Origin: Perkinsela sp. CCAP 1560/9
Taxonomy: Eukaryota; Protista; Euglenozoa: Kinetoplastea
Direction: 5' to 3'
Assembly (NCBI GenBank): GCA_965644495.1
Contig: CBFFSA010000005.1
Span: 62,001-126,000 of the forward strand
Length of the DNA stretch: 64,000 nucleotides
Every line of letters begins with the position of its first letter. The stretch's first letter is position 1. The notes under the pieces were generated by a model. The model ran no database searches, was not told where the DNA came from, and saw nothing but the letters and a program-made list of their open reading frames with translations. The position numbers and the translations under genes are program-made. Positions 261-59,037 of the stretch are shown piece by piece.

Positions 261-285
261 AAGGTACAGTTTCTGTACCTTGTTG
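261..285 (+). other. 5'-truncated spliced-leader (mini-exon) relic
   Basis: AAGGTACAGTTTCTGTACCTTGTTG matches the 3' 25 nt of the copies at 45591 and 51254 with one mismatch, and carries the kinetoplastid SL core ACAGTTTCTGTAC..TTG. It is followed by GC, not a GT donor. Confidence 0.8.
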
Positions 286-1208
286 GCACATTTTCCTTTA
301 GTTCATCTTTTCTTTCCCCGGCAACGGGCATAGTCTTGCTGTTTTATATGCCCGTTGCCGGCCGGCACTAAGGCCGAAACTGTCCCTCTTTCTCGGCGAA
401 GCAGGGGACGCGTTTCCACCCCTTCACTCCTTCCCGGATCACTCTTTGAATGAGTTTACTTCCCTCCCCGGCTTTCTTACCTTCGCGCCTTTCCTTCCCG
501 GGGAGCCATGCACCACGGTGGCCTCCCTTGAGGACCACTGGGCGTGGCTCTGACTCGTCTTATCGCGAGGCAGCGCTCGGTTGCAGTGCGCCTCTCCGGC
601 TGCGTAAAGAGAGGGCGAGTTGCCTGGACCCCCTCTACCGACAGGGTCCGTGCTAAACGCCCTTGGTGCGACATCCGTCATTACGGATTGAGCCGATTTG
701 CCCTTGTGTAAGATTGTAGGTGCACTTCCTCCAATTTTGAAGAGTGGATGTTAAGCACTCAGCGTCAAAAATGTGTGGAACGAGGAACTTTGGATGCCTT
801 CACCGTGAAACCACAATTACAGGAATTTCAGCGACACCTCCTATGGAAAATCAATCATGGGGTTAGCAATGCTGCTTTGCAGGACCCAAACCTTAAGTGG
901 CTTCTTACGAAGGGACTGCGCTGTGTTCCTGGGGAAAGTACGATCAACAACTTACTCAGCTTTTGACACCCTGAACATGGGGAGCAAGGTCGGGACCTTC
1001 TCGTGGTCTTCCCTGACACTGCCATCTCACTGATGGTACAGACGCCGACCAACTAGTTCTCGGTAAGCTTTTGACACCCTCAACATGGAGCCTCCCTGAG
1101 ACTGCCATCTCAGAAAAGGGTTTTCAACCCCGGAACTGCGAGCCGAACGCCAGGCCCCCGAGATGAGCACCCCTTACAACATCCAATACAATTTTGGGCT
1201 TCTTGAAC

Positions 1209-1826: not shown

Positions 1827-2346
1827 CTGTGCCCCCCCTAGTTATCTATCACACGTCAACCCCCCTTTGTTATTCTTTTAAACTTTTTTTTATTCTTTTA
1901 GACCGCATAAGAGGGTTGAAACCTATGAAAGACAAAACCCGCATATTTCTCATTGACGTGGCGAAGAAAAATACTCCCCCCTAGTTATCTGTCACACGTC
2001 ACCCCCCCCTAGTTATCTGTCACTTTTTGGCGCTTCGATTTTTTTTCGTCGACTACCCCCCTAGTTATCTGTCACTTTTTAAAAATAGCTAAAATAGCTT
2101 TTTCCAAAAAAAATCATAAAATGAAACTTCCAGTTTTTCTTTTTGTGTTTCAAGTGAATGGTCGTGCGTGGTACTATGATAAACCGTTTCTGTAATTCCA
2201 TGTTCTGACTTTTTTTTGCGACAGACACCCTCCCTAGTTATCTGTCGCACACTGATCCGCCTAGTTATCTGTCACACCCCTACCCCCCCTAGTTATCTGT
2301 CACCTTTTCACGAAGAGTAGTGACAGATAAGTAGGGGGGGGTACAG
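1827..2346 (+). mobile_element. Tc1/mariner-type MITE, family F (CTAGTTATCTGTCAC repeats)
   Basis: TA|CTGTGCCCCCCC ... GGGGGGGGTACAG|TA termini with many internal CCCCTAGTTATCTGTCAC motifs. Homologous to 6300-6620 and 49770-50147. Confidence 0.85.
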
Positions 2347-2419
2347 TACTTCATTGTTCTGGACTCTGCTTTGTCCATCACGAGAATGTCCTAATTACAA
2401 CGTTACTAAAGGTACCTTT

Positions 2420-2720
2420 CCCACGGAATTGTATTTTTCATTAAGACGGGGCCACGGTATACACCGCACGTACCGCCAAGGAGTACACTGAAAACAGTTC
2501 CCCCAATTCACCAGACCTTTCCCCTATAGAAAACCTTTGATCAATGGTCCAAGAGGTAGTGGACGAGCAGAATCCAGGTAAACCTTCACTCATCCGATGC
2601 ACGATGTATACGCAAGGCGTGGTCTCGTTTTCTACAAAAATGATTGATAAAACTTTTTTGAGTTTCGATATTCGCCTCAAAGCGTGTACAAAATTGAATG
2701 GCGAAAAAGCGAAAAAATGA
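2420..2720 (+). pseudogene. Tc1/mariner transposase C-terminal remnant
   Basis: Manual translation IFH*DGATVYT..SPNSPDLSPIENL*SMV..IDKTFLSFDIRLKACTKLNG matches the QDxAxxH / SPDLNPIENLW / RLKACIxxxG Tc1 motifs. In-frame stops at 2442 and 2538. Confidence 0.8.
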
Positions 2721-3112
2721 TAAATGTATTATAAATAAAAACCATCCTTAAAGATATTTTTGATTCCAGTTTTTAGCACGCAAAGTCTTTGTGTTGAGAT
2801 CTTCAAAATGCAACAAAAATCAGCTCAAACGGTCACTTGGCTGCAAAGTTCGTGAGGGCGGGGGTGAATTTTCGCTGTGGAGGGTTTAAATACGTCAATT
2901 TCACAACGTTCGTTTTTGTGAACGCAAGTTCATAAAAAAATCACCCCTCCCCTAGCTCAGCAGCACCCGGATGCACCCACCTGTTTCAACCCTCTTAGTA
3001 GCCTACGGGAATTATCTACTTGAATTTTGACAAAGCTTTAAAGAATACGACTGAATATTCAGCTATTAAATGAATACTCCAGTATCTCACTTCTAAACTA
3101 TTTTACTTCCAC

Positions 3113-4543
3113 ATGTCGTCTTTTAGCTCCATTGTCCCACAGATCGACCCCAACGTACTCCGTACGTTACACACTGAGTTCAAATTCACAAGCCCCACTC
3201 AAATTCAGTCGTCCGCTCTCCCTGCGCTATTATCTGGGCGCAGTTGTAGCGTGCAAGCCGAAACGGGCGGGGGTAAAACGCTCTGCTTTCTTATACCGAT
3301 CGTTTCTCGCTTACAGCAACATAAGCGCAGTGCAGATCCATGTCCATACGCCATCGTACTATCACCCACTCGAGAGCTATCATTACAAACTGAAAAAGTT
3401 TTGGAAAAACTTTTGACGGGGTTCGATGGAAGAATCAAATGGGTCACTGTCATCGGGGGTACGAAAAAGTCACAGGACCACGCTCGGCTGCTGAAGGCCA
3501 ATATTGTCATTGGGTGTCCGGGGCGTGTGTTGGACCACATGCAGTCTTTCACGGCATGGAAATTTCCTTCCCTCAAAGTATTCTGCCTGGATGAGGCAGA
3601 TCGCATTCTTGACAGCGGCTTTGAAGAGCACGTCACCCAAATTCTCTCAAAGCTCCCGAAAACAGATCTCCAGCTCATGCTCTTTTCCGCCACCCAGGAC
3701 CACACAGCACGTGACGCCATGCAACGTGTGATTCAACAATTCGGCACCCTCGAGCACATTTCCACCCACAAGAACGCCTCCGATGTCTGTCACCGTCTCG
3801 CCCACGGCTTCGTCGCGGTCCCCCCGGAACACAAATTCCTCCTGCTCTACACGTTACTCAAAAAATACCACAGGAGTGGACAAAAAGTGCTGGTCTTTGT
3901 GGCCACCTGTAACCAAGTACGCTACTTTGCGGATCTCTTGAACTACCTGGACATCCCGTGTACCCCGCTGCATGGCCAGATGCGGCAGTCGACCCGCACC
4001 TCCACGTTCCACCAGTTCTGTGCGGCCAGCCACGGGGTGACGCTGCTGACTACGGATGTCGCGGCCCGCGGGCTGGACTTCCCCGCGGTGGATTGGGTGG
4101 TCCAGCTGGATGCGCCGGAGAGTGTGACGAAGTATGTCCACCGGGTGGGCCGCACCGCCCGGGGGGAACAGGGCTGTGGCAACGCACTGCTGATGCTGAG
4201 CCCCCAGGAAACGCCGTTTTTGGATTTTTTAACGGCGAAATTGACGAATCCACTGCAGCAGTATGCGATGGATACGAAAAAACTGAATGTGGCACTGCAA
4301 ATGGAGTTGCAATCGCTCGTAGGGAAGAATTACTATTTGAGAAGAAGCGCGCATGAGGCGTATAAGTCGTTTCTGCAGAGCTACGCGACGCACTCGCTGA
4401 AAGTGGTGTTTGACGTGTACGCGTTGGATTTGTCCAAGGTAGCGACGGGGTTCGGGATGGAGACGGCTCCCATTGTGGATTTAGGGTTATCCGAGAGCTC
4501 GTTGAGGAAAAAGCGTGCGAAAAGAGTTCGACATGATGAATAG
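3113..4543 (+). CDS. HAS1: ATP-dependent DEAD-box RNA helicase, HAS1/DDX18 family
   Basis: Motifs AETGGGKT, PTREL, DEAD, SAT, ARGLD and HRVGRTAR. C-terminal KNYYL..SAHEAYKSFLQSYATHSLK.VFDV is typical of Has1. Confidence 0.9.
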   Translation: MSSFSSIVPQIDPNVLRTLHTEFKFTSPTQIQSSALPALLSGRSCSVQAETGGGKTLCFLIPIVSRLQQHKRSADPCPYAIVLSPTRELSLQTEKVLEKLLTGFDGRIKWVTVIGGTKKSQDHARLLKANIVIGCPGRVLDHMQSFTAWKFPSLKVFCLDEADRILDSGFEEHVTQILSKLPKTDLQLMLFSATQDHTARDAMQRVIQQFGTLEHISTHKNASDVCHRLAHGFVAVPPEHKFLLLYTLLKKYHRSGQKVLVFVATCNQVRYFADLLNYLDIPCTPLHGQMRQSTRTSTFHQFCAASHGVTLLTTDVAARGLDFPAVDWVVQLDAPESVTKYVHRVGRTARGEQGCGNALLMLSPQETPFLDFLTAKLTNPLQQYAMDTKKLNVALQMELQSLVGKNYYLRRSAHEAYKSFLQSYATHSLKVVFDVYALDLSKVATGFGMETAPIVDLGLSESSLRKKRAKRVRHDE

Positions 4544-39964: not shown

Positions 39965-40291
39965 TAGTCTATTACATTAAGTTCTACTATAGAACAGTAC
40001 CTGATCACAACATTCTTCCTTGTGATACAGGGTATACTTGCCAATGGTTCCTTACCTGCAATTCCGATACTGCCGCCGGCAGTGCATTCACAAGAGGCAA
40101 TGCCCAAAAAAGAGAATATTTCCACATATGATTTTGATGTTTCGAATTAACAGAGGGAATAGTTGGCCTAGTTTGTATCGTAAAACATGCACCTTTCTAA
40201 AAATATGCTTCTGTTTTATTTCTCTTTAAATTGATTGGGGCTTTGAAGTTTACTAGTTGTTAAGTTCCTTACATTATTCCATTCTATCTAA

Positions 40292-43200
40292 ATGGCAAGT
40301 CGCACAGATTCCTCGGAAACAATGGAGGAAGCAACTGAGAGTGCCGTCAGAGTTCTGGTCCGTGTTAGACCCTTTCATGACCGAGAACTTTCTACAGGGT
40401 TTTCAGTTCCAGTCATTCGAATGCCAAGAACGTCATCAACGAATGTTATTGTCCTGGACCCCAATTATGAGTTCCGACCGAGAGAAATGTTTACCTTTGA
40501 TTCTTGCTTGTGGTCGATTCCAAATGTACCTCAAACAGACTTTATTTCTCAGGAAACCATGTATCGAATTGCCGGAGAACCCGCGCGGGACAACGTTTTG
40601 GCTGGGTATAACGCTTGTATACTCGCATACGGTCAGACAGGAAGTGGGAAAACCTACACAATGATGGGAGACCCAGAAAACAGTGAAGAGCAGGGTATTA
40701 TTCCACGTGTATTTACCGATCTTCAGCACGCTTGCTCCAAAACTCCAGGTATGCACCTACAATGTACTTACCTAGAAATCTACAATGAACGCGTCATGGA
40801 TTTACTCGAAAAAAGTGACCGCGAGTTGCGAGTGAGAAATGATCCTCTGACTGGCCCATTTGTAGAGGGACTAAGCATTCACGGTATTAAAACAAAGCAC
40901 GACATACTTCACCTGCTTAGAGTTGGTAACGCAGAACGCCACACCGCATCAACAAAAATTAACGAACGCAGCAGTCGTAGTCATGCAATACTTACTATTT
41001 TCCTATGCCGCGGGAAAGACGGCACTCGTTGCGCGTCGAAGCTACATCTCGTAGACTTGGCTGGGTCGGAACGAACCTACGTCTCTGGGGCCGAAGGCAT
41101 TCAATTTAAAGAAGCTACAAAGATAAATTTGAGTTTAACCACACTGGGTCGCGTCATTGATGCTCTTGCTGATCAGTCATCGGGTAGATCTGCCCTCATT
41201 CCACCATATCGTGAATCTCTTTTGACTTGGATACTTTCCGACTCCTTCGGCGGAAACAGTAAGACCTGCATGATAGCAGCTATTTCACCAGCCTCAATAA
41301 GCGTTGAGGAAACAACAAACACGTTACGCTACGCCTCCCGAGCAAGGGAAATAATTAACATGTGTGTGATTAACGAGGACCCGTACGAAAGACGCATCAA
41401 GGAATTGTTAGCCATTATTGAACGGCTACGTAGACAATTATCGGTTGTCCAAGCACAGTCAAAGGGTATTTCGACCCCTTGGAGACGAAACCGGGCCGAT
41501 GAACTTTCTCGTGGATCTCCTGCACTCTCGCTGTCTGCCAGGTCAGAAAAGGCGTCTTACATAGAAAGCCCGAACTCATCTTTAGAGCCTGGTGCCCGAC
41601 GTCTGCGATTCGAAACCCCGGAGGAGGACTCAGTGAGTGCTCGACACGGAAGCGACAAGAAACTTAATATTGAGCTTGAAGATCTCAGAAAAAGGTACCA
41701 AAATTTAGTACAGCTTTGCAATGAGGCCAAAAGAAAAGCCGATGACGAAAGGAAGGCGCGAGAGGCTATAACAAGGAAACTTCGAAATGAGATGAACGAA
41801 ATTATTTCTGATACTTCCAGCACCGTGAGTGGTGCTACAATAAATCTTAAAAGTTCTAGACGAATGCAAAAGCACACGAATATTTCATCACATGGAGTTG
41901 TTCAAAGTGAAAATATAGAAAATGCAAAAGAAAAGTACTATGCGCAAAATGTTGCACTTTCCAAAGAAAATGAGGAACTGAAGAAAAAGCAAGGATCGCT
42001 TACTGAAAAAATAGAAGAGCAAGAAGCCCAAATAGCACGGTTGCGCCGACAGGTAAACGATCTTGAGGATTACAAGAAGTCACATTCCACAATAGGATTT
42101 GAGCGAGCCGCTGAAATGGAGGCATCGTTGCGGGCGGTTGCACTTGAATATGGTACGAGCACGCGGTCGGCTATTGCAAACATGACGTCGGCATTTACAA
42201 CCTCTCTCGCGCAGCATAGTAAGGCCGTTATTCAAAGGCATGTTGCCGATGCAACCAAAGATCTTCGCAGAAAATGGATTGAAGAATCTGCCAAGCTCAA
42301 AGGCAACACAAGGAACAGGGGTGAATCCGTTGAGTATGATTCCCAGACGGGGAACGGTTTGTCAGGTTCTAGTAATCCAATTATAATGATGAACGAAGAG
42401 CATGATACGCAAATAAGACGAATTCGAGAAGAAAACGAAGCGGCCCTTACCGAGCTACGTGTGGAGCTAACTAGAGAATGTACAATGTTGGAAGATAAAG
42501 TATCTTCTCTTGAAGAAAAGACAGGCACCATGGAAAAGAACGAAGACAATTCTCATTTGCAAAGACTTAGTGCTTGTGTTTCGGAAGAGCATCAAAACAG
42601 GGAAAGGGTATTTCGAGAATTTGTGGACGAAAGATACGCTATATCGACTGGTATGCTTTGTGAATATTCCGCACATTTCATAAAGCTTCAAGGACTTTCC
42701 AATGGTTATCAGGAGGAAATGAACCGCGCTAATGAACAAATGGAAACAATGGGTCACAAAATTAATGTTGAGAAATCTTCTCTGCAAGTTGAGTCGAAGA
42801 ACATGAGAGATGCAACTTCAGCAATTTTAAATGAGCAGGCTGTGGCCATGAGCAAAAAGTATCAACTGTTTGAACAAACTATTTTTCCGTCTTTTGGAGT
42901 CGTACGAGAGCACGACTTCCTTCTTATCGACAACCTGAAACAAAGGGAGATAATGTCTACGGAAACCGAAAAGAGGCTACGGGAAAAACTTGCGGACAAC
43001 CACATCAAGAATGCCAATCTAGAAGCAGCACTCAATAGGAATCTTAATGATTTCATATCGTTCGACCAACGCTGCGTGAAACCATTTTTGAATGATTTGG
43101 AATCTGAGAATGAAGCGGAGCTAGCTGCTATACAGATCAAATTTGATGGAATTATTGACCAGAATTCTCTCTTTTTGCAACGAAAAGTTGATATGTTTAA

Positions 43201-44875
43201 GCAACGGTATAAGCTACAATATGCAGCTTACGAAGGACTTCACCAATCGCTCTGCAATTCGTACCGGACATTATTCTCGCAGTATCAGGAACGCACTGAG
43301 AAGATGTTTAAAGATAGTGTTATCCAAGACATCTCTAATCTACGGGCTTTGGAATCAGATTCCAGAAAGGATTTGCATTCCTTCGAGGAATATTGTCGAC
43401 AGATTATTGAGACGAGCACCAGTATGGCAAGTAAGATAGTAGTCTCTACGGTGGATCGGTATAATGAGCGATTACATGGAATACGCGACGATTATGAAAC
43501 ACGGCTGAAAGAAGCGGAAATTAGTATGCATGAACTAGAGAGAGACAAAGAGAGTCAACTCGAAGGCATGCTGAAACGGATGGGAAAAGTATCTGAAGAG
43601 AAACGTCAATGCGAAGTTCTCTATTCCTTCCTTGTAGATGAAGCAAAGGAACGTCGTCGTTTAGAGGCCCTGTATTTGGATGAATATTTCCGAATAGTGC
43701 ATCATGAACTCGAACAACACGAAGTTGTTAGTTTGTATGACAGTAATATGTTAAATAGGCATGATTGCCAAGAATTCCTATCAGGCCAGAAGCTGATTCT
43801 TTATAATTCCAGCGCAGAGATTTGTTTGCAGCGCGGAGAACTAGAAAATGCTTTTAAACAGGCTAGTGAAGCAACTCGTAATGAAAATCTTTTTAAGCTT
43901 GAAGAACAGCGTACGAATCTTAATGATCATTTTGAAGCAGATAAGAAACGCTCACTCGATGATTTTAGCGCTTCTGAGAAAAAGTGGCAATCACTTTTGA
44001 TGGGGGCAGAAGGTCGTGCGCAGAGTTCTGAAGAGTATTCTAAAAAACTTGTTGTTTATATTGAAGAGTCCCAGGTATTAAACGAGGAGCACACATTCGA
44101 AATTCAACGCATGCAAGGTCAAGAGCAAGATGAAAGACTTGTTGCGCATTATCAATACGCACTTGAACGTGGAAGTATAGTGCAAGAATGCGATAGAATT
44201 TTACTAAAACTCAAAGTCCAAGAATATGAAACTCGTATTACACAAATGACGCGAGGATACGCTGCTGAGATGGATGCTTTAGGATCTCAGCATGCGCGCC
44301 AAAAGCAAAAAATTCAGAATATTGCAGAGCGTCGATTAGAGACATTAGCTTCCCTTCAAGAAACAACTCCCCGATATTTGGAACTGTTTTCGGCAACTTT
44401 CCTTGCGTGGAATTCAGCGGTAGAAAACACTTGGATACAAAGCTTTAATATTTCGACACAAACATGGAACATGCGTATGTCATCAACACATTCAGAAAAA
44501 GTGGATTATCTCAGGAAACTACACAGCAAAAAACTGGAAGAAATCGAAGCGCAGTCTTCGAAGAACCTACAGGACGTGCGAAAAATCGACAAGAGCCATT
44601 TTCTAAATCGCTTTGCTTTGGAAACCGAGGAGCATCAGGAACGCTACAAATCTGTCGATGAATTTAGCAACAAGCTAATGGGTATTTATATTACATTTCA
44701 TAACGTGGTTTTCAATGAGTTTAAACAACAGGTAGGAATGAGCCGCATGATTGAGTTTGCACTTAACTCAGAAATGGATAAACGAAGTAAGCTTGAAGTG
44801 GAGAACCAGAAACTTCAGGGTGCGGTCGAGATGTACAAGTTGCTTCGCTTAGAGTCTGAACTTGAAACTGCGTGA
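40292..44875 (+). CDS. Kinesin (kinesin-3-like motor) with a long coiled-coil tail
   Basis: AYGQTGSGKT, SSRSH, DLAGSE, PYRES and GGNSKT. Confidence 0.93.
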   Translation: MASRTDSSETMEEATESAVRVLVRVRPFHDRELSTGFSVPVIRMPRTSSTNVIVLDPNYEFRPREMFTFDSCLWSIPNVPQTDFISQETMYRIAGEPARDNVLAGYNACILAYGQTGSGKTYTMMGDPENSEEQGIIPRVFTDLQHACSKTPGMHLQCTYLEIYNERVMDLLEKSDRELRVRNDPLTGPFVEGLSIHGIKTKHDILHLLRVGNAERHTASTKINERSSRSHAILTIFLCRGKDGTRCASKLHLVDLAGSERTYVSGAEGIQFKEATKINLSLTTLGRVIDALADQSSGRSALIPPYRESLLTWILSDSFGGNSKTCMIAAISPASISVEETTNTLRYASRAREIINMCVINEDPYERRIKELLAIIERLRRQLSVVQAQSKGISTPWRRNRADELSRGSPALSLSARSEKASYIESPNSSLEPGARRLRFETPEEDSVSARHGSDKKLNIELEDLRKRYQNLVQLCNEAKRKADDERKAREAITRKLRNEMNEIISDTSSTVSGATINLKSSRRMQKHTNISSHGVVQSENIENAKEKYYAQNVALSKENEELKKKQGSLTEKIEEQEAQIARLRRQVNDLEDYKKSHSTIGFERAAEMEASLRAVALEYGTSTRSAIANMTSAFTTSLAQHSKAVIQRHVADATKDLRRKWIEESAKLKGNTRNRGESVEYDSQTGNGLSGSSNPIIMMNEEHDTQIRRIREENEAALTELRVELTRECTMLEDKVSSLEEKTGTMEKNEDNSHLQRLSACVSEEHQNRERVFREFVDERYAISTGMLCEYSAHFIKLQGLSNGYQEEMNRANEQMETMGHKINVEKSSLQVESKNMRDATSAILNEQAVAMSKKYQLFEQTIFPSFGVVREHDFLLIDNLKQREIMSTETEKRLREKLADNHIKNANLEAALNRNLNDFISFDQRCVKPFLNDLESENEAELAAIQIKFDGIIDQNSLFLQRKVDMFKQRYKLQYAAYEGLHQSLCNSYRTLFSQYQERTEKMFKDSVIQDISNLRALESDSRKDLHSFEEYCRQIIETSTSMASKIVVSTVDRYNERLHGIRDDYETRLKEAEISMHELERDKESQLEGMLKRMGKVSEEKRQCEVLYSFLVDEAKERRRLEALYLDEYFRIVHHELEQHEVVSLYDSNMLNRHDCQEFLSGQKLILYNSSAEICLQRGELENAFKQASEATRNENLFKLEEQRTNLNDHFEADKKRSLDDFSASEKKWQSLLMGAEGRAQSSEEYSKKLVVYIEESQVLNEEHTFEIQRMQGQEQDERLVAHYQYALERGSIVQECDRILLKLKVQEYETRITQMTRGYAAEMDALGSQHARQKQKIQNIAERRLETLASLQETTPRYLELFSATFLAWNSAVENTWIQSFNISTQTWNMRMSSTHSEKVDYLRKLHSKKLEEIEAQSSKNLQDVRKIDKSHFLNRFALETEEHQERYKSVDEFSNKLMGIYITFHNVVFNEFKQQVGMSRMIEFALNSEMDKRSKLEVENQKLQGAVEMYKLLRLESELETA

Positions 44876-45021
44876 GGGAGCATACCGTTTAAGTGCCTAG
44901 ATTGCCTGGTCACATTCCTGCGCTCATATTTTTAAGATGCGCAGCTTTCATAAAATGTGCAAATTTCTAGTACTAACTTTTAGTCTACGAAAGTCGCTTA
45001 TAGTATTATAATTTTTCAAAT

Positions 45022-45589
45022 TCTTTTTTAGGCTCTTCGTTAAACGCGGTGGTTGTTTTCAACTTAGAAGTCACTCATGCTGTGCGCTTCGCATTGAAAA
45101 CTACCGCCGCGTTTAACGAAGAGCCTAAAAAAGAAAAATCTCCAAAAGATCATGAATAATCCATTTTTTTGGGGGAAAAAGCTCGATTTTTCGACAAAAA
45201 TTGCGAAATTTTACACCATTTTTGGGCCGTTTTGGATGCCTTACCAGTAGGAGAAGGAGTCGAATCTGTCGACAAAAACGTCGTAGAATGGTAGCTGAGG
45301 TCCAAAACTCTCCAAATACGGTTTAGGAGTCGATTTTGGAAAAATAATATTTTTACTTTTTGGGTCAAACGTTTTTTTTTTGGTACCCCAAAAATTTCGG
45401 AGTTTTTGACCTTGTCGGACCCCTTCCGCGCGTACCAGAGGGGGGTACGCCCAGGTGTGGGGGGGTGGAAATTCATCGCCGCGGCTTACTCTACCACTTC
45501 CCCGCGCTCGATTTCGAAAATCAAGATTTTGAAACGACGTATGCCCCCTGGACCCCCCCTGGACCCCCCCCCCCCATGGACCCCCCATC
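45022..45589 (+). mobile_element. Family B-related element, 5' part, interrupted by an SL-headed retroelement
   Basis: Same left hairpin as 17085-17200; internal part similar to 62940-63130 (reverse complement); breaks at GGACCCCCCAT. Confidence 0.8.
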
Positions 45590-45590
45590 T

Positions 45591-45624
45591 TTAACGATAA
45601 AGATACAGTTTCTGTACCTTGTTG
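45591..45624 (+). other. Spliced-leader exon relic
   Basis: TTAACGATAAAGATACAGTTTCTGTACCTTGTTG is identical to 51257-51290; flanks are unrelated; no GT follows. Confidence 0.9.
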
Positions 45625-47540
45625 AATCCTTTTTCTTTTCTCTACCTCTACTCTTCTCTCCCCCCGATACATGCCCACGACACGACGTCGACGAGGCTAC
45701 CGGGGGCGCAAGGATTCACCCGGTGGGCCCGATTCCCCACCTACCTCGACCTCAGGGGGACGCTCTACCACCCCTCTCAGGCGAGGTTCTAGCCCCCACT
45801 TCTCCACCGAGACTGTGGGGCTACACCAGCTCTCTATCGAGGAGCTGAAGAAGGCGAGGCCGGACCTTGAAGTCCGTGCAAAGACCCCTTTCAAGTCCCG
45901 CGCGTGCGACTTCTGTGGCCTCCCTTTTGTGCCCGCCAGGCGGGATATGTGCTTTTGTGATGCGTGCATTTCCCTTCGAGCGCAGCACAGAAAAGACCTT
46001 CGCGCGCGTGCGAAGACGCAAACCCCCGGGATCCCTCCTCCCCTCTCTGCTTCTTCTCCTAGGTCCTCTCGACACCGGTCGGTAACCCGAAGACCCCCGC
46101 GCTCCATCTCTCCTCGGAGCCGCTCCCGGAACAGCGATGGCCCGCCACCCGGTGAGCGGTCGTTATCCCTACCCACAATGGCACAGCAGTTCAAATCCAT
46201 GGACGCTGTCCGCCTCAAGCTCCTTCCTGCCCGAACCGGCTCAAATCGCTTTTCCGCGGAGACAGGAAGATGCGCAGTCACCTTATGGCTGGCTGTGACC
46301 CTAAGCGCCGAACACGACGTAACATCAATGATGGAGAAAGAGGCCCGTGAACGTCGGGCCCTTACACTCGAAGCCGTTTGGACGCTGCACGACACCCACA
46401 AGTCCATCGAGGAGCGTATCTATCTCATTAATGAAGGGTGTCTGGTTGGCTCCGAATGCGGCATCGCACTCTTCAGCCGCACATTGTTGCCCTCCAGGCG
46501 CATCGCATCAAGGTGCACGGGCCGAAACGCCTAAGGGTTGCGTCACGGGCCCTGCTTCGGGAACACGCCCCGGAAGCCCTCAGGAACAAGGCCGATCGCT
46601 TCTCCTCCTTCATGGCTCTATATGAGGAGTTCTGCACGATGGAGGCCCACCTCCAAAGGGCACAGGCGAGTGCGATGGCTGGCGACCCACCCTGGCCCCA
46701 GCCCACCTTTCGTTCTCCCCCTCTTCCCACACCTTTCCCTGGGATAGCGACGAAGCTAATCCCCTCGCAGGCTACACCTGCACCGCCAACCAATCCCCAG
46801 GTCGACTCTGTTTCAGAACCCTTCAAGATCCTGCTTGATCTTGGGCCGGAGTGAGCCGGATATGCCACTATCCCCTGCCCCCCGGACTCCTCTTTCCAAG
46901 CTTTCCTCGGCACAGTGGGGAACACTTTAGGGGTCCCTGGGGAAAATCTCCTCCTCAAAGACAGTGCTGGCGAAACCACCCCTATCACAGATCGGGAGGG
47001 CCTAGATCGCGCTCAACGAGTAGCGGTCAGCCTGTCCCTACCTCCGTACAACCCCCGTAACAACGAGGAGGCCGTTATTCGGGTGTACGATGGATCCATG
47101 CACGGGTTCATCAACGCCCCCGGACTGCAGGCAGCCCACCACATCCCGGCCGGTCTGAGTGAGATTCTCGGTATTCCCCCAGTGCTGACTGGAGCTTGGA
47201 AACCTCGTGAATACGAGGAGGGCGTGCTATGGTGTTTCCTCCCTACAGAAACCCTAGTCAGCGAAACGGGATGGACCACCCGGGTTGTCAAATGCAATCT
47301 ACGCAGGGGATGCATCGAGGCAAACCCTGGCCCCAGACACAAGAACCGAGGGTCGCTGGCCTCATCCGCGCCCCAGCCCCGGCAGGCACCGAGCGAGACT
47401 CCGAGTGCCCTCCTCCAGGAGCCCGACACCTCTTCCCCCAGCAGGGAAGGAACTATCATGGATGGAATCGCGGCTGTGACTTCTCCGCAACACCCTCCTC
47501 TCCATGCATCTTCCTCCCATGCTCCTAATAAAAGAATTGA
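45591..47540 (+). mobile_element. 3'-truncated SL-headed CRE-type retrotransposon (ORF1-like region only)
   Basis: Frameshifted ORFs 45671/46438/46915 with a C4 finger, a C2H2 finger and a 2A-like peptide, collinear with 51331-53022. In-frame TGA at 46852. The 3' boundary is approximate. Confidence 0.8.
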
Positions 47541-51049: not shown

Positions 51050-51229
51050 CTGTCCCCCCTCCCCTTAAGCGCACCCGGCCAGACCCCCCTGTTTAAGCGC
51101 ACACAGAGTTGAAGAGAAGGGGGCCGGCGGCGCGAAGCGGCGCCAATTTTTTTTTACGTAACGATTCAGACCCCCCCGTTTAAGCGCACTTTTCACGGAA
51201 AACGAGGTGCGCTTAAACGGGGGGGACAG
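51050..51229. mobile_element. Tc1/mariner-type MITE, family H (TTAAGCGCAC repeats)
   Basis: TA|CTGTCCCCCC ... GGGGGGGACAG|TA. Confidence 0.85.
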
Positions 51230-51253: not shown

Positions 51254-51290
51254 AACTTAACGATAAAGATACAGTTTCTGTACCTTGTTG
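51254..51290 (+). other. Full-length spliced-leader exon copy (37 nt)
   Basis: AACTTAACGATAAAGATACAGTTTCTGTACCTTGTTG shares the AAC start, AACG, ACAGTTTCTGTAC core and TTG end with trypanosomatid SL (AACTAACGCT...ACAGTTTCTGTACTATATTG). Confidence 0.9.
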
Positions 51291-53180
51291 ATTTATTTCC
51301 TCCTTTCCTTCACTACTACTTCTCCCCCCCATGTCAGAACTCCCGCTCAAGGGACTCTTGTTCTGCGCTTACTGTGGCTCGAAATTCGAACCACTCTCCC
51401 CCACCCACCGGTTGTGCCCAGTCTGTTTATCCACAACCGGCACTGCGTCCCGTATCATTTGGGACAAACCTAGCACCCTTGGGCCCGTTAACAACGGACT
51501 CAGGCAGACATCCACCTCCCGAGAGGCCAGAAGCATCCCCCAGAAGCATCCCCCAGAAGCATCCCCCAGAAGCTCGTCCTCCCGCGCGAGGTCGAACTCG
51601 AGACCGCCCCTTCACCGACAGTCCGAAGGACCTCACACACGCTCGCCATCCAGTGTATCTTTCGCCCCCAGGAACACTTCTTCACATGACTCCGAGTCAT
51701 ACGCCGACAAGGCCAAATCCCTTTCACCCCCGATTCTTAGGAAAACAAGGTTAGGTACAGATCCCCCCTCAAACCTCTACACCCCTTGGCAGAGCCCCAT
51801 CACTCAAGGAACAGCTAGCTCTCATAGGTAAGATGAACCAGGATTTCCTGGGTATCTACATCAAACACCAGCGAGACGACGGAGTGCCCTTCGGGTTGAA
51901 GAGGGAAGTGACAGCCAACCGGCTGTCATGCGCCGTCCGAGAAATAGAGAGAGAGTACCTGGCGACGAGGGATGCCCTCTACACCGAGTGGCTTGACCTC
52001 CTCTGTCAGGACGCCCGTCAGGAATACAGACATCGCCAGCTTGTCATAGACAAAGCCCACCTGTGTCAGACCTGCGGACAGGTTTTTCGGGACCAGCGAC
52101 GTATGATCGAGCACAAAACCGTCCACGAAGTGGCCGCGGCCCGGGCGATGGTATCCCGTCTCTCATCAGAGCACCGCCAGGGAGCTATGATGATTGCGGA
52201 ACAACAGTGGGCCTCTGCCGCCGACCTCTTCAGCCATCTCTACCAACAACTCCAAAACCTGTACGCACCCCCCCGGCCCCTCCCCCGACCCCTCCCCCAG
52301 CCCCTCCCCCGGCCCCTCCCCCGGCCCCTCCCCCGGCCCCACGGAAACGTACAACTTGGAAGTGGACAACCCTCCCCCCCCACCTTGCCGCCAAACCTCC
52401 CGCCCTCACAAACACCCCAACCGACGCCCCTAGCGGCCCTTACCCATCACCTCCCCACCAGCAAGGCGGACACCAACTCTCATCTTCGACGCAACCCTCC
52501 GAAGAACCATGGACTAGGGTCAACCTGCACCTCGGACCCCACTTGGCCGGACACATCCAGGTCCCCGTCCCTGCCAGACACCCCCTACAGAGTTTCGTAC
52601 AAGCGGTGGGCTTTACCTTGGGGGTCCCCCCCGACCGCATAAGCCTGACCAACGAGCCGGGAGGGCCATACCTGGTGACCGATGAGGACCTGGAAGAGGC
52701 TGAGTGCATTTGGGCCTCTCTGCTCACTCCAAACCACGGCCCCTCCCACGGTCCCCACGTCAAAGTCTTCGACGGATCGGGAGCAGGAGCAAGCATAGAG
52801 ACGCCGTCTAATCTCCCAGGCGAACATATCCCCTTTTCCCTATGCCACGCCCTGGGTGTAGCCCAGTGCTTCGCAGGAGCCTGGACGCCGTTCGTGTCGG
52901 AGGGCGGAACGGCTTGCTGGAGCTTCACGCCCACGGAGGGACTGATAGCTGACTCGGGGTGGTCGGCCGAGTTAGTCCGGTGTAACCTCCGTAGAGGGTG
53001 CATCGAAGCCAACCCGGGACCACGCCGCGCAAAACGGAAGAATAAAACGCCCAAATCCTCCGGCCCCGCGGACAGTAACCCCGTGAACGTAACGGGACAG
53101 ACGAGCACTCAAACCGAGGACACCCCCACCCCACTACCCGACCCCCACATTACAGACCCCATTCCCACACCCCCGCATCA

Positions 53181-53570
53181 GGGGGGGGCATGCCGGACGC
53201 CAGCGAGGATTGCGCCGAGGCTGGCAGCCTCAGAGCGGGCCCGTATCCAAAATCCCATTGTAATGGGGGGTCCATCCCGACACACAACAGCCTGTCCTCG
53301 GGCCCTAAGTCCACATCCCCTGTTCTGGGGGGGCCATGCCGGACGCCAGCGAGGATTGCGCCGAGGCTGGCAGCCTCAGAGCGGGCCCGTATCCAAAATC
53401 CCATTGTAATGGGGGGCCCACCCCGACACCCAACAGCTTTTCTTCGGGCCCTAAGTCCACATCCCCTGTTCTGGGGGGGCCATGCCGGACGCCAGCGAGG
53501 ATTGCGCCGAGGCTGGCAGCCTCAGAGCGGGCCCGTATCCAAAATCCCATTGTAATGGGGGGCCCACCCC
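53181..53570 (+). repeat. 146-bp tandem repeat (~2.7 copies) inside the retroelement
   Basis: Identical ORF starts at 53190, 53336 and 53482. Confidence 0.92.
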
Positions 53571-53719
53571 GCACTCTCGCGGGACCCTGATCGAGCACAT
53601 CGCGGCGGCCGCCAATGTGCCCAAAATTTCTCAGCGGACGACGGGAGAGGGGGGGACATCGGAGGTGGGGGGGTGTCTTCCACCACACGAAGCAAGCAAT
53701 CCACCCCGACAACCCAGGG

Positions 53720-55859
53720 CATACCTATGTGTTCTATGAACACTTTTTTTTGTTCATTGAACACATAGAACGCATTGAACACTTTTTGGGGAGGTACACA
53801 TCACACGAACATGTCGATTATTATTCATAAAACCTTTTTGTTTTGCGCATATCCAAGTGATTACACATGCCCTAGCTATGCAGTATAAGAATGCCGCGGT
53901 ATGAGGTTCTCTCTTAGTACGCGTGGCAGCTTTTTTTGTACTCGCCGAACGTAATGCATTTCTCATTTCAAAATATTTTGCTGTTGTTGTTGCAAAAAAC
54001 TATTGTTTCCCTCATTTAGTCAAGCATTATCTATTACCCTCAACAATTTCTAATGAGAGGACGAGGTCCCACAGGAACCTTTCGTGCCCGTCGAAGAAAA
54101 ATGGGAAGCCACCAATCCAAATACAAAAATAAATCCAGTATCCAATATGACCGACTTAAAGTCGGTTAAAAAGCTTCACACTTTCACCTTGAAAGCTTTC
54201 ATCTATGACTTCCAAGTTCAGAGTTTATATTTGTCTGATACGGTACAAACAAACAATATTTTTCCCATAACCTACAAATAATCCTCAAGGTATTCAAAAT
54301 TTGCAAAGATACAATTCCATCAATTCTTTCCTTACGTAGACGGTTTCCTATTACCGCCAGTTCTCGCAACCTTACCTCGAAGCACACTTCGTACCTCAGC
54401 TTCGCGCTTGGATGCCGGAATGTCTCGCGCTGGCCCATTTCCAAGGGATTTCATTTTGAGTAAGGCCTTCAAAGACCATAAAGGCTGTGAATTCTCCTCA
54501 TTTTCCGAGTTGTCAGTTGTTTTTCTCCTTTTTGGTATCGGAAGCCGATCCACTTTCATGCGAAACATAAATAATATACCATCAGCCTCACTTTCATACG
54601 AAACACAAGCCTTTATAAAATGATCACAGACGAATCCAATGGCTTGGGCGCTTAAAAATTATTCAAAAAGTGTGTTCAAAAATTAGTAATTTACGAGTGG
54701 ATTATATTACGGTTACAGTGTTGTATTTAATTACGGTATTACTTAATTACGCTTTTAAGGTAAGCGTAATTAAATAATACCGTAATTAAATATAACACTG
54801 CAATCCATTTGCACCCCAATCCATTTCCATGGGGAACCACCCTCTCGAATGCGGTATTATTTTCCGAAATTGAAAAGTTTTTGCAAATTTTAGACCCCCT
54901 CCCCAGATGGAAATTTTCACCCCTGTATAAGCCTTTACTTATCCGATGTGTACAAAACGGTCTCGTTTGCCCCAAAACGTAAATACCGTATCGACAATAC
55001 GGTATTAAGCTTTGACTCTCGCCTTATGCAGTGTATAAAATCGAACGGCGAAAAAATGACTAAATGGTAATTCTTCTCTAAAATATACGTATTCGCTTCT
55101 TTTTGTTTCGTTTCTTCACGCGCAAAGTCTTTGTGTTGAGATCTGCAAAATGCTACAAAAATCAGCTCAAACGGATGCTTGTACGAAAGAAAAAGTGGTG
55201 GGTCACTTTTCATTGGGTGGGGTTTATGAACGCTTTCCGTGGTGGAGGGTGTTTATCGTCATGAAAGGCTCAATACAAAGGCAATGCTCTTCACCTGCGA
55301 CTTGAAGAATATGATAGCCACGCTAACAAAGCAGCGAAAGACTTGGAGCGCTTTCATGGCCTGCTTCTGAATAGAAACCTGGGTCCAGATGAAAAAAAGA
55401 AAGTACTCGATACACTTGTGGGTGAAAGGGGACTTTTCAAAGAAAAAACCTGAATTTTTTTCCTCATCTTCGTTGTCGTCATTTCCACTAAACATTCTTT
55501 TTGCACTGTGAACACATTATATGCATTAAAGAAGTTTGTGTGCCGAATTGATTAAACGCCTAACACGTGTTAGGACCAACCTAACTGGGGGTTGGGGCCT
55601 CTTCGTGGTCCCCCTTGACGCTGGAATCATATCGATGGCACAGACTCGCACCACCTATTCTGCCATGTACCTACATGTACGTGAGGATCTAGGTCGTGTA
55701 GTACCATCTGGGGCCATTTGAATGAAACAAAGCTTCAAAAAAAAATTGTTTGTACTTCAGGAAAAAAAATCGAAAAAGTGTTCTATTGGTTCATAAAAGT
55801 GTTCATTGAACCATAGAAACACTGAACACACACAAGTGTTCATAGAACACATAGGTATG
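53720..55859. mobile_element. TIR DNA transposon inserted in the retroelement
   Basis: TIR CATACCTATGTGTTCTATGAACACTT at both ends; CCAGGG duplicated on both sides; GAACAC subterminal repeats. Confidence 0.9.
54716..54800. repeat. 85-bp near-perfect palindrome (mini-MITE)
   Basis: CAGTGTTGTATTTAATTACGGTATT ... AATACCGTAATTAAATATAACACTG with a paired interior. Confidence 0.85.
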
Positions 55860-55949
55860 CCAGGGCGCTCCAGTTGAGGAGCGTGGGCAAGCCCCTTCCC
55901 CCGAAAACTTAGCACAGCTCCTTGGGAGGGGGTCCTTACGTAAGCTGTA

Positions 55950-58249
55950 CGCACTCCAATACCCGGCTTGGAAGGAATACACCGCCGGTGTATGCCATGA
56001 TTTTATTAACAAGTCAGTGGAGGGCAAGGTCGAGATGGCCTGGAACCTCCTCCTCGCCGTTAAACGTTTCCTTTTTCTCCCCAAGGACAAGCTGTCGCCA
56101 CGCCAGCTAGCGCGCGAACTGAGAATGCGTGCCCATCTAGAGGGTTCGGAGACCTTGACTCCATCCCCGAGTCAGGCCAACGGCCCCCCGTGGTCTGTCA
56201 AAAACGGGTCGAGGAATTGTGCAGGGCGGGTTGCTTCTCCAGGGCGGCCAAAACGATGGAGGCGCCCCTCAATCCTCCGGCCAACCCCACGGCGGCCCTA
56301 GAACAGGCTAAGCGTCCACACCCCACAGGCGGGCTCTACACTGCGGGGAAATTCAGGTACAATAGGGACCGACACGGAACCCTACCCTCCCCAGCCGATG
56401 TGGCCAGGAAGGCTCAAAGCCTGGCCCCTATCCGCGCCCCCGGACCTACGGGATGGACCAAGGAACTGCTTGTCCCAATCCTCATGGAAGATGGACCCCG
56501 CGACTGTATCACGTGGATAATCCACGGGATAATGACTAACTCCCTCCCCCCCTCAATGAGGGAACTGCTCACGGGGGCGTCTTTAAAACTATTCACCAAA
56601 CCGGACTCCCCGGCGGGGCGCCACTCTTCCTACAGGCCCGTCGCCATGGGAGGGTGCATCCTCAAGGTGGCGGGGCTCCTTGCCCTGGATGAAATCCGGG
56701 AACATCTCCCCACTTACTTTCAGGGCATCTAGTTTGGAGCCCAATACACGCAGGGGTGTGAGCACATAATTTATAATGTGCGACAGCACTTCAGGGACAG
56801 GCCGAAGGAGGTCATCGTGGCTGCAGACCTCGAGAACGCTTTCAATAGCATCTCACGGTCGGCAATTTTTAGGGCGGTAAGGGGGGATCCGAAACTTCTC
56901 CCCATTGAGGGCATCACCCTTTTCAGCTACGGTACCACAAGTACCCTTCACCTTGGGGAAGGCCAATGCATCACGAGCTCAAGGGGGGTCAAGCAAGGTG
57001 ACCCCATGGCTCCCATCCTATTTGCCATAGGGATCCAGGGGGCAATCGCCAGAGTGGCGGCCAACTTCACAGGTGCGCTGAAGGTCTGGGCGTACCTAGA
57101 TGACGTCACCTTTGCTGGTGAACCCAAGGTTTGCGCGGAAGCCCTAGAGGCCCTCCGCGAGGAGCTGAAGCATCTTGGGCTACGGCTAAATACCGCTAAA
57201 TGCAAAGTAACTACTAGACGCGAGGACCTCTTCTCCGAGTTCTCCGGATCTCGCATGGTCAACTCCCCCGGGGGGTCAAACTACTGGGGTCAAACTTCGT
57301 CGGGGTGTCGGAGGCTAGGGAGGAAGAATGGGTGCTTTCCAAGGCCCCCAAGGTAATCTCCTTCCTGGGGAAACTCAAGGACATTAGCAGGCAATGCGCC
57401 TTGCCCCTCTTAAGACTCTGTGAGAGTCCTCGATGGAACTGCATCGTAAGGACCCACGAGCCCCGGGTCACTAAAGTGGCCAATACCCAGGTCGACAAAG
57501 CTGTCCTGGCATCTGCTGAGGCCTTGCTCGGGGGGATGGGCTCCTTGGGAAAAACGCCGTTCTCCAATAACCTTTTCACGGCAGATTTCCTGGGGACCAT
57601 CCCCTTCGAGCACAAGGCGGAAGAAATACAGGCCAAGGCGAAGAACGCCCTACAGGGCCGACCCCAAGGCATGTCAGCCAAGGAACAGCGGCGCAACCTC
57701 TGTGAGGCCGCGTTGGGGAAAGCTCCGACGGCTACCCAACTGGTCTGCATGCGACAGACCCAGAACATTCACTCCACTAAGTGGGTGAACGCATGGCCCA
57801 ACAGGCCGGAGTATTACATGCGGGACCCGCAGTGGGAGACTGCGGCCCGTCTCCGGTACTTGGTCGCCGGGGGCCCGACATATGCTTCCAGCAGGGACGG
57901 AAGACCGCCCAAGTTGATGTCACAGTTGTGAACCCACTGGCCCCGTCCTACGTGGAGAAGGAGGCCGCAGAGCCTTCTCATACCCTGAGGATGGCCGAAG
58001 CGGCGCTCACACGATGAGATGGCGACCGCCTGAGGGAAGGAATTTTACCCCTTGGCCTTCACCACGTACGGGATCCCGGACCCAGAGACCTTGAACTTCC
58101 TAACCAAGGTGGCCCGGGCCCACACATCCGACAAGAACGGATGCATGTCCCACCTTCTGATGGCCATAGGGGTGGCCATCCAGAAAGGTAATGCCCAGAT
58201 TGTACAGGCGGCAGTACAAGACTGGTACCGCCGCGGGGTACGAGGCTAG
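55950..58249 (+). pseudogene. Reverse transcriptase plus restriction-like endonuclease (CRE clade), frameshifted
   Basis: RAPGPTGW, YRPVAMG, *FG..GCEHII, DLENAFNSISR, GVKQGDPMAPILF, AYLDD, GLRLN..KC and PDI..VDVTV..PLAFTTYG. In-frame TAG at 56730. Confidence 0.93.
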
Positions 58250-59037
58250 CTGGGCGATGGGGTTTAGGGAGAGGGAAAAAAATGTAATTATAATTATAAT
58301 TACTTATGGATGTGAAACTGGTGAACCTGGAGGGGAGTAAAAGTTGTTATATTAGATACTTGCCATCACAATTTCACAAATAAGCGCTTCAAATAGATAA
58401 TCGTTCTAATCCTACGTCAGTAAGGTTATCAAGCTCATGAGGCGTGTATGTTCTAGTGATTCTTCGGAACGTATATTGTTGATCACTTTGCCAAATTGAG
58501 TTTCTAGAGCGTCTGTAATTGTTTGACGTAGAACGCATTCGTGCTCAAAAACGAGTTCATTGAACTTAAGAGTTTCATCCAGAGCGTGCTCTCAGTCACT
58601 TTCACTCATTTCGAAAATGGGGCGAAACCAGAGAACTTTTTTCTCAACCTACCTTTTCGATGGTCTAACAACAACCGAAGTAAAGTCCACGAGAAAAATG
58701 GCCGTTGTGGCTTGCACAAGTTGTCACTGGCTTGCAGTGGCAGTACGCATGAGGTCCATTAAGTAGTGACAGGAAAGTAGTGACAGGAAAGTAGTGACAA
58801 GAAAGTAGTGACAGGATCTTTTTCCTAAAACAAAAAAAATCCAATCGGTCGAAGTTGCATTTATAATTACTTATGAAAGACATAGGAATTATAAGTCATA
58901 AGGGAGTAAAAGTGCGAGTTCAAGGCGTATTTATAATTACTTATGGAGGGGGGAGTATACAGAGGAGTTTATAGAAAATCCTTTTTAAAAAACTTGAATA
59001 TTACCGTATATATTTTCAGAAGAAAGAATGTTTATTG

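Follow-up and report, generated by a model that had tools for sequence, protein, structure and literature searches.

The stretch of DNA analyzed in this work (the window, 64,000 nt from Perkinsela sp. CCAP 1560/9) is a one-strand array of intron-less housekeeping genes (helicases, a kinase, a kinesin and others), as in kinetoplastids. All host genes of the window are located on the + strand, as are three copies of the spliced-leader (SL) exon, each at the 5' end of a mobile element. The element of main interest here, at positions 51254-58282 of the + strand, is a decayed R2-like retrotransposon that lacks long terminal repeats (non-LTR) and is of the restriction-like endonuclease (RLE) type. 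It begins with a 37-nt copy of the SL exon (51254-51290), which differs from the 38 nt of the SL RNA gene in lacking one T of the T-run at positions 4-6. This copy is joined directly to a 5' untranslated region (UTR) of 40 nt and 90% pyrimidine (51291-51330), whose start ATTTATTTCC is a variant of the A(A/T)TT(A/T)TTT start common to many SL-headed families, and which is followed by the ATG of open reading frame 1 (ORF1) at 51331. At the other end the element terminates in a short 3' UTR with an A7 tail (58250-58282, tail at 58276-58282). Both the SL-UTR-ATG junction and the A7 end were found as described in an initial annotation of this DNA, as was the lack of an SL behind the 3' tail, where unrelated, AT-rich DNA without SL or intron sequence follows.

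ORF1 (51331-51831, + strand) encodes 166 aa with an N-terminal CxxC...CxxC zinc-ribbon-like motif and has only weak Pfam matches. The 5' part of ORF2 (51833-53720, + strand), frame-shifted in the window copy, contains a C2H2-like finger (52064-52126; Pfam E 0.035, below the cut-off), a proline-rich stretch, a 2A-like motif and tandem repeats. The 2A-like peptide IEANPGP (53002-53022) lies between the N-terminal part and the part of ORF2 with the repeats and the reverse transcriptase (RT). Motifs of this kind have been reported in use by L1Tc and some other non-LTR elements. The repeats upstream of the RT are in-frame units of 146 bp (49 aa), of which the window copy has 2.7 (53181-53571). About 9 units of the same 49-aa repeat are present (at 2300-3600) in L053, a 96%-identical, 5'-truncated copy of the element with an intact ORF of 1371 aa. 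ORF2 is then interrupted by a nested DNA transposon of 2139 bp (53721-55859), which is not part of the retrotransposon and has terminal inverted repeats of about 39 bp, a CCAGGG target duplication and a GC content of 39%; no further copy of it was present among the loci examined. As judged by comparison with L053:2216-6331, the remainder of ORF2 (55860-58249, + strand) comprises the RT (Pfam RVT_1 match within 56778-57356, E 1e-16) and a remnant of the C-terminal restriction-like endonuclease.

The same comparison revealed frameshifts and a 201-bp deletion at 57868, due to which the zinc knuckle in front of the endonuclease is missing. The initial annotation had treated the element as intact; because of the nested transposon, the deletion and the frameshifts, the window copy is a dead element. 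Its A7 tail compares with tails of more than 10 A in intact relatives and about 21 A in L053. Within its subfamily it is the only copy that reaches the 5' end, four other copies being 5'-truncated; older sister copies have kept the order of leader, UTR and ORF1 with a decayed leader. An Rfam scan of the window returned no family at threshold and hence no HDV (hepatitis delta virus)-like ribozyme call. Short palindromic units, possibly miniature inverted-repeat elements, are located upstream of two of the SL-headed copies, at 51166-51227 (cores GTTTAAGCGC...GCGCTTAAAC) and at 45033-45127 (cores GTTAAACGCGG...CCGCGTTTAAC).

Besides the 49-aa tandem repeats and the RT, the intact ORF of L053 encodes a CCHC knuckle and, C-terminally, a domain in which the aspartates typical of restriction-like endonucleases are conserved. 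The residues C545, C547, H559, C563, H575, D607 and D620 do not vary among 25 aligned relatives, and the element family is predicted to encode a C-terminal CCHC knuckle together with a restriction-like (PD...D/ExK-type) endonuclease. The Pfam RVT_1 domain is recognized in the intact relative with an E value of 5.5e-20, and its best PDB matches are R2 proteins (9nl3, 9dou and 8gh6; E 2e-53 to 1e-34), which cover the RT and, for R2Bm, reach further toward the C-terminus. The hallmarks of RLE-type elements, namely a non-LTR RT, an A-rich 3' end and frequent 5' truncation, are present. The nearest named database proteins are Diplonema proteins that were automatically named after SLACS (28% identity). 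Word, profile, exhaustive HMMER and ESM Atlas searches for named CRE, SLACS or CZAR sequences yielded metagenomic proteins without such names. The CRE-clade membership assumed in the initial annotation is hypothetical, and the defining target feature of that clade, insertion into the SL exon at nt 11/12 with promoter and intron around it, is absent from these elements.

The SL 21-mer core matches the window three times, always on the + strand, compared with 0.00 matches expected from 100 shuffles. Besides the element just described, the core occurs at 45604 and 265, and the intron start GTATGAG directly follows the SL at none of the three copies. At 45588-47525 (+ strand) we find the 5' 1.9 kb of a second SL-headed element, which is cut off near 47525. 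Its SL (45588-45624, 37 nt) consists of a T replacing position 2 and of SL positions 3-38, followed by a 46-nt UTR and an ORF at 45671-46534. The third element, at 265-697 (+ strand), belongs to a non-coding family that contains a hairpin and resembles short interspersed nuclear elements (SINE-like); the copy measures about 410 bp and its SL part 21 nt (265-285). The initial annotation had assigned the same SL, without a following intron GT, to two other, different elements; the SL cores and the missing GT hold for both, but the element at 45588 belongs to a sister RLE family.

In the 21-Mb assembly (110 contigs), bona fide SL RNA genes occur as two tandem units at C1:661 kb. In each of them the 38-nt exon leads into an intron that starts with GTATGAG and is rich in stem-loops, and a T-run follows. 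At a distance of 0.5 kb from the two units there is a 5S rRNA gene, a linkage that is usual in Euglenozoa (PMC10161547, PMC7859406). No Rfam model matched the SL RNA gene, and the SL sequence itself was not found in the searched literature. One public sequencing run of unrecorded library type is RNA-like in that its contigs cover only the kinesin gene (40256-45035) and leave the spacers bare. At the 5' end of this gene, a contig carries 25 non-genomic letters, not themselves read, directly upstream of the polypyrimidine tract and AG at 40255-40256, a pattern that fits leader addition. Both lines agree with the earlier proposal that the 37-mer is the SL of this organism. A highly covered contig end upstream of an SL was considered as a further SL gene and rejected, since it turned out to be one more SL-headed locus.

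The 21-Mb assembly contains just two bona fide SL RNA genes, and the main SL/5S array is probably collapsed in it or absent from it. The promoter-proximal 24-mer directly upstream of the SL exon has two genome matches, both at the real SL RNA genes, and the intron sequence has seven, each behind its exon. This agrees with the earlier view that the elements are dispersed and are not insertions into SL genes, and SL promoter or intron sequence flanking most copies was not found in the assembly.

In the complete assembly, the SL 21-mer has 534 matches, whereas the reversed control has none. At least 150 RT matches were counted in the genome. The intron follows the SL core in 8 of the 534 cases, at least 5 of which are retro-copies of the whole SL RNA, as evident from an end at GGGGCTTA with an attached A-run, from changes in the first bases and from flanks that are new. 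Such retro-copies, comprising exon, intron and A-run, are found at unrelated sites (C2:801600, C20:10940, C25:23931, C49:34382 and C86:12045; L126-L130), and three of them are followed by a common GGCGGAGGTGGCGGAG... repeat, which looks like the result of a template jump linking an element RNA to the SL RNA. The junctions were analyzed on 96 distinct examples from the first three contigs, read in stretches of 281-401 bases (mostly 281) and in 3-kb loci, and not on all 534 matches. They comprise 61 diverse junctions, 30 of the SINE-like family and 5 with exon and intron. In the diverse junctions the exon directly abuts a UTR (median 39 nt, 73% pyrimidine) that is followed by an ATG, and they fall into about 45 clusters by ORF start. 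Besides the zinc-ribbon type, the readable ORFs behind them include RNase H and LsmAD-like motifs. The flanks are unrelated at every SL copy read.

Of the 61 diverse junctions, 21 have a run of poly(A) ahead of the leader, in several cases the tail of another element; in L053, for instance, the tail of about 21 A is immediately followed by the leader of a different family. Insertion into resident tails would fit this arrangement, and so would a template jump in which the enzyme leaves one mRNA at its 5' end and continues on the tail of another. There are also leader duplicates that are partial, with additional bases and with joints that are not at AGs. The SINE-like family (0.4 kb; 265-697 in the window, 29 loci elsewhere) has a leader shortened in every case to 21-31 nt, with a mode of 28. 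Its junction falls after an internal AG, between cctttAG and ttcatc, its flanks are random, and poly(A) was never seen upstream of it, which suggests a different integration route or an inherited piece of leader. A further arrangement is found in an array with a period of 5093 bp (G000:C1:2477647-2492925; L073, L074), in which the leader is internal to the repeat unit and sits between two copies of one 28-nt sequence (…TTATTTGTATTTCGCACGAATAAAAGT).

Hundreds of retrotransposon copies, including the one at 51254-58282, are very probably DNA copies of trans-spliced element mRNAs, which would account for the SL exon at their 5' ends. The 61 diverse junctions as well as that of the window copy consist of the exon only and lie at the exact splice point. 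An enzyme that copies SL RNA brings the intron along, and the exon-only nature of the diverse junctions therefore argues that the leader came from spliced RNA. Of the three routes put forward in the initial annotation, the data favour reverse transcription of trans-spliced RNA over a template jump onto SL RNA and permanent capture of the exon.

Two further observations bear on this reading. The 5' damage in the element copies is restricted to SL positions 1-4. Among 27 copies that match the gene from C3 onward, 24 have a T at position 2 instead of the A of the gene, and other copies begin at SL positions 5, 7 or 8, often behind one to three odd bases; the window copy has the missing T within positions 4-6. 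Since the retro-copies of SL RNA show G or A at position 2, the T is not a gene variant in the assembly. These first-base errors point to capped RNA as the source and could be understood if the enzyme stumbled on cap-4-type methylated bases and added an untemplated base. The T at position 2 may accordingly be a footprint of a modified cap-proximal base plus an untemplated addition.

The second observation concerns tandem relics of the leader. In 9 copies a full or partial SL is followed by a 16-nt relic that begins directly behind the AG at SL positions 21-22, and in 2 copies by a 22-nt relic that begins directly behind the AG at positions 15-16; one locus contains two consecutive 16-nt relics. 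Among 32 tandem forms such post-AG relics are the most frequent, and at least 8 distinct sequences follow them downstream. The window copy itself is without a second, partial leader. As the 11 relics start exactly after the internal AGs of the SL, DNA copies headed by an SL have been transcribed within a longer precursor, trans-spliced again and re-inserted. The initial annotation had suggested a search for tandem SL relics, which was thereby successful, and had asked how daughter copies could be expressed again after loss of the acceptor AG. The two AGs within the SL and the 11 copies with relics exactly behind them provide an answer in part; most copies carry a single clean SL.

Copying of trans-spliced mRNA would thus form a cycle. 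The elements sit in sense direction inside polycistronic gene arrays, where read-through transcription would supply the element RNA precursor. This RNA would be trans-spliced and polyadenylated like any host mRNA, and the element's own RT and endonuclease would then copy the mature mRNA, from the poly(A) tail up to the cap-proximal SL bases, into new sites. Copies headed by an SL can re-enter the cycle via the two AGs inside the relic SL.

Several alternatives have to be weighed against this model. Elements adjoining an SL could be ordinary CRE/SLACS-type insertions into SL RNA genes, the SL being target DNA. One distant relative on a public contig (L155) is indeed followed by SL positions of about 12-39 and a GT, and the naming of the closest named database proteins after SLACS points in the same direction. 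In the elements described here, however, the SL is located at the 5' end and uninterrupted, with no split at nt 11/12, and UTR and ATG come behind it; the promoter-proximal sequence is confined to the two real genes, the seven intron matches always lie behind an exon, and the flanks differ at every copy. We consider this explanation extremely improbable. Alternatively, an RT that has reached the 5' end of an unspliced element RNA could switch to SL RNA and copy it. Template jumping is known for R2-type enzymes, and here, too, switching is evident from the partial SL duplicates, which have extra bases and joints that are not at AGs. The separate class in which a whole SL RNA with A-run is joined to a GGCGGAGGTGG... 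repeat is also in favour. Such a jump starts at the 3' end of the SL RNA and therefore carries the intron, as in that class, whereas at the window copy and the 61 diverse junctions nothing but the exon is present, joined precisely at the splice point. As one of the routes proposed initially, template jumping onto SL RNA is seen as a separate, intron-keeping class but does not resemble the exon-only junctions, for which we regard it as highly improbable.

A different kind of explanation is a heritable 5' module, in which the SL copy and the conserved UTR start would serve as an internal start signal, comparable to Pr77 of ingi and L1Tc. RNAs would then start with an SL templated by DNA and need no trans-splicing, and each clean copy would have a clean copy as its ancestor. 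This idea adds to the route via trans-splicing, which must have supplied the SL at least once, and does not replace it. It gains from observations that weigh against repeated copying of trans-spliced mRNA as the source of all leaders. An SL-less master, with an AG preceding the UTR, was not found; a search for masters with AG in place of the SL had been among the checks proposed in the initial annotation. In one family of 39 copies the SL end precedes 16 of the 16 copies that keep the UTR start, and in two seemingly leader-less copies of this family the leader is mutated or shortened. An AG relic is present in only about 2% of copies. The strong acceptor in the UTR of the 39-copy family (cttccAG just before the ATG) left no copies. 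Many of the about 45 families, moreover, have a UTR start in common despite unrelated ORFs (A in 34/45; A[AT]TT[ACT]TT in 21/45). There are also precedents: Pr77 binds transcription factors of the SL gene (PMC8190864), and retroposed DinoSL has been suggested to act as a promoter (PMC6050394). On the other hand, about 45 families have an identical SL, whereas old copies decay in the ordinary way, for which re-acquisition is the simpler explanation; the 5' irregularities, with T at position 2 in elements as opposed to G or A in the SL RNA retro-copies, resemble fresh copying; and known kinetoplastid SL promoters sit upstream of the exon. On balance, such a module appears rather unlikely. If it existed, the SL together with the A(A/T)TT(A/T)TTT pyrimidine UTR would imitate a trans-spliced, translatable mRNA without the spliceosome; the leader would be true heritable cargo, and the dominance of clean copies would be accounted for.

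With respect to copying of trans-spliced mRNA, the lack of an SL-less master means that clean single-SL copies need a source that is not visible in the assembly. The excess of clean copies fits masters located in unassembled DNA, and it also fits a 16-nt repeat that usually collapses during copying. Two other sources were considered and rejected: re-splicing at the UTR's own AG, of which no such copies were found, and masters inside SL genes at the exon-intron border, which for this assembly, with its two assembled genes, conflict with the distribution of promoter and intron sequences. Three more points count against the trans-splicing model. Junction variants inside UTRs mostly lie elsewhere than at AGs. 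No clear target-site duplication surrounds the window copy, where only a doubtful AT-rich 8-mer offset by extra bases was seen. The RNA support is indirect, as the runs consist of contigs of unrecorded library type and the extra letters at the kinesin gene are unread. These run data are k-mer contigs, none of them recorded as RNA, and they break within the 38-nt repeat, so that they neither bridge the junctions between flank and SL nor show RNA starts.

Related elements were also sought in other organisms. An exhaustive protein search returned 9613 relatives, and the contigs of 9 of them were readable. Five of these 9 elements begin with a leader of another type (ending ...CAGTTTCTGTACTTTATTG). 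One leader-headed element is present in six runs and ends in poly(A), two leader-headed metagenomic contigs have non-leader DNA upstream, and one leader-headed relative (L156) carries a 16-nt post-AG relic. Elements of other organisms thus have their own 5' leaders, and the trait is not private to the Perkinsela genome; it may be general for RLE elements of free-living kinetoplastids and diplonemids. In L155 (7894-7923 of a public metagenome contig), a relative of 2286 aa is followed by leader positions of about 12-39 and the GT of a Bodo-like SL gene, and judged by this junction it represents a classical SLACS/CRE-type SL-gene insertion. In an unrooted tree of 25 relatives, elements with a 5' leader occur on both sides of the deepest split, and the element inserted into the SL gene falls into the half that holds the window family. 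This one distant relative in an SL gene might point to a loss of SL-array targeting in the window lineage, as the initial annotation had supposed.

Leader-tagged retroposition as such has a precedent outside the Euglenozoa. Slamovits and Keeling (2008) reportedly described dinoflagellate retrogenes with relict DinoSL, referring to a 'recycling of processed cDNAs'. Dinoflagellate SL-tagged retrogenes have since been reviewed (PMC6050394, PMC5585692). As in the present case, their genomic copies start with the leader because the trans-spliced mRNA was reverse-transcribed, and partial leaders, truncated at the internal AG, are what successive cycles leave behind (PMC6050394). Multiple relics are few there as well, and the answer suggested is that the retroposed leader aids expression (PMC6050394). 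In the dinoflagellates, however, which are alveolates with a 22-nt leader, the cargo consists of host genes mobilised in trans, whereas here it consists of autonomous retrotransposons of about 45 families with their SINE-like dependants, in a kinetoplastid-like euglenozoan with a 38-nt leader. Unlike in the dinoflagellate retrogenes, a cap-proximal copying footprint is seen, too. The mechanism is the dinoflagellate kind of SL-tagged retroposition, acting on retrotransposons and their dependants in a kinetoplastid-like organism.

The CRE-clade elements SLACS, CZAR, CRE1 and CRE2 share with the elements described here the non-LTR type, the central RT, the C-terminal CCHC motif and restriction-like endonuclease, the physical link to the SL, and the phylum. 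They differ in that they split the SL exon, have target SL on both sides and keep the promoter and intron of the gene, whereas here the whole exon is found at the 5' end only, at hundreds of dispersed sites and without promoter or intron. R2 has the same domain order but is specific for 28S rDNA, with its 5' end freed by a ribozyme, while no rDNA target is evident here. Pr77 of ingi, L1Tc and SIDER (PMC1874656, PMC8190864) is likewise a short 5'-terminal module in unrelated families of one phylum and is tied to the transcription machinery of the SL gene; it is not an SL, however, and yields unspliced transcripts, and a promoter role of the SL and UTR is hypothetical here. A literature search of incomplete coverage yielded no description of SL-headed retrotransposons, but only the work on dinoflagellate retrogenes, Pr77 and SLACS-type elements.

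What is new is that SL-tagged retroposition, known for host genes of dinoflagellates, here hits mobile elements across the whole mobilome, in a phylum for which textbooks describe the reverse relation of retrotransposons to the SL, namely insertion into SL genes. The leader on every full-length insertion would serve as a dated tag, with relic counts giving the cycles gone through, and the insertions may preserve a record of how the RT reads modified cap-proximal bases. For annotation, SL copies in such genomes mark the 5' ends of elements and not SL genes. In this regard, roughly 80 'partial SL' contigs that were reported from a prokinetoplastid (PMC7859406) may represent the same phenomenon. 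Overall, these elements offer a test case for how retrotransposons persist where transcription is polycistronic and each mRNA needs a leader.

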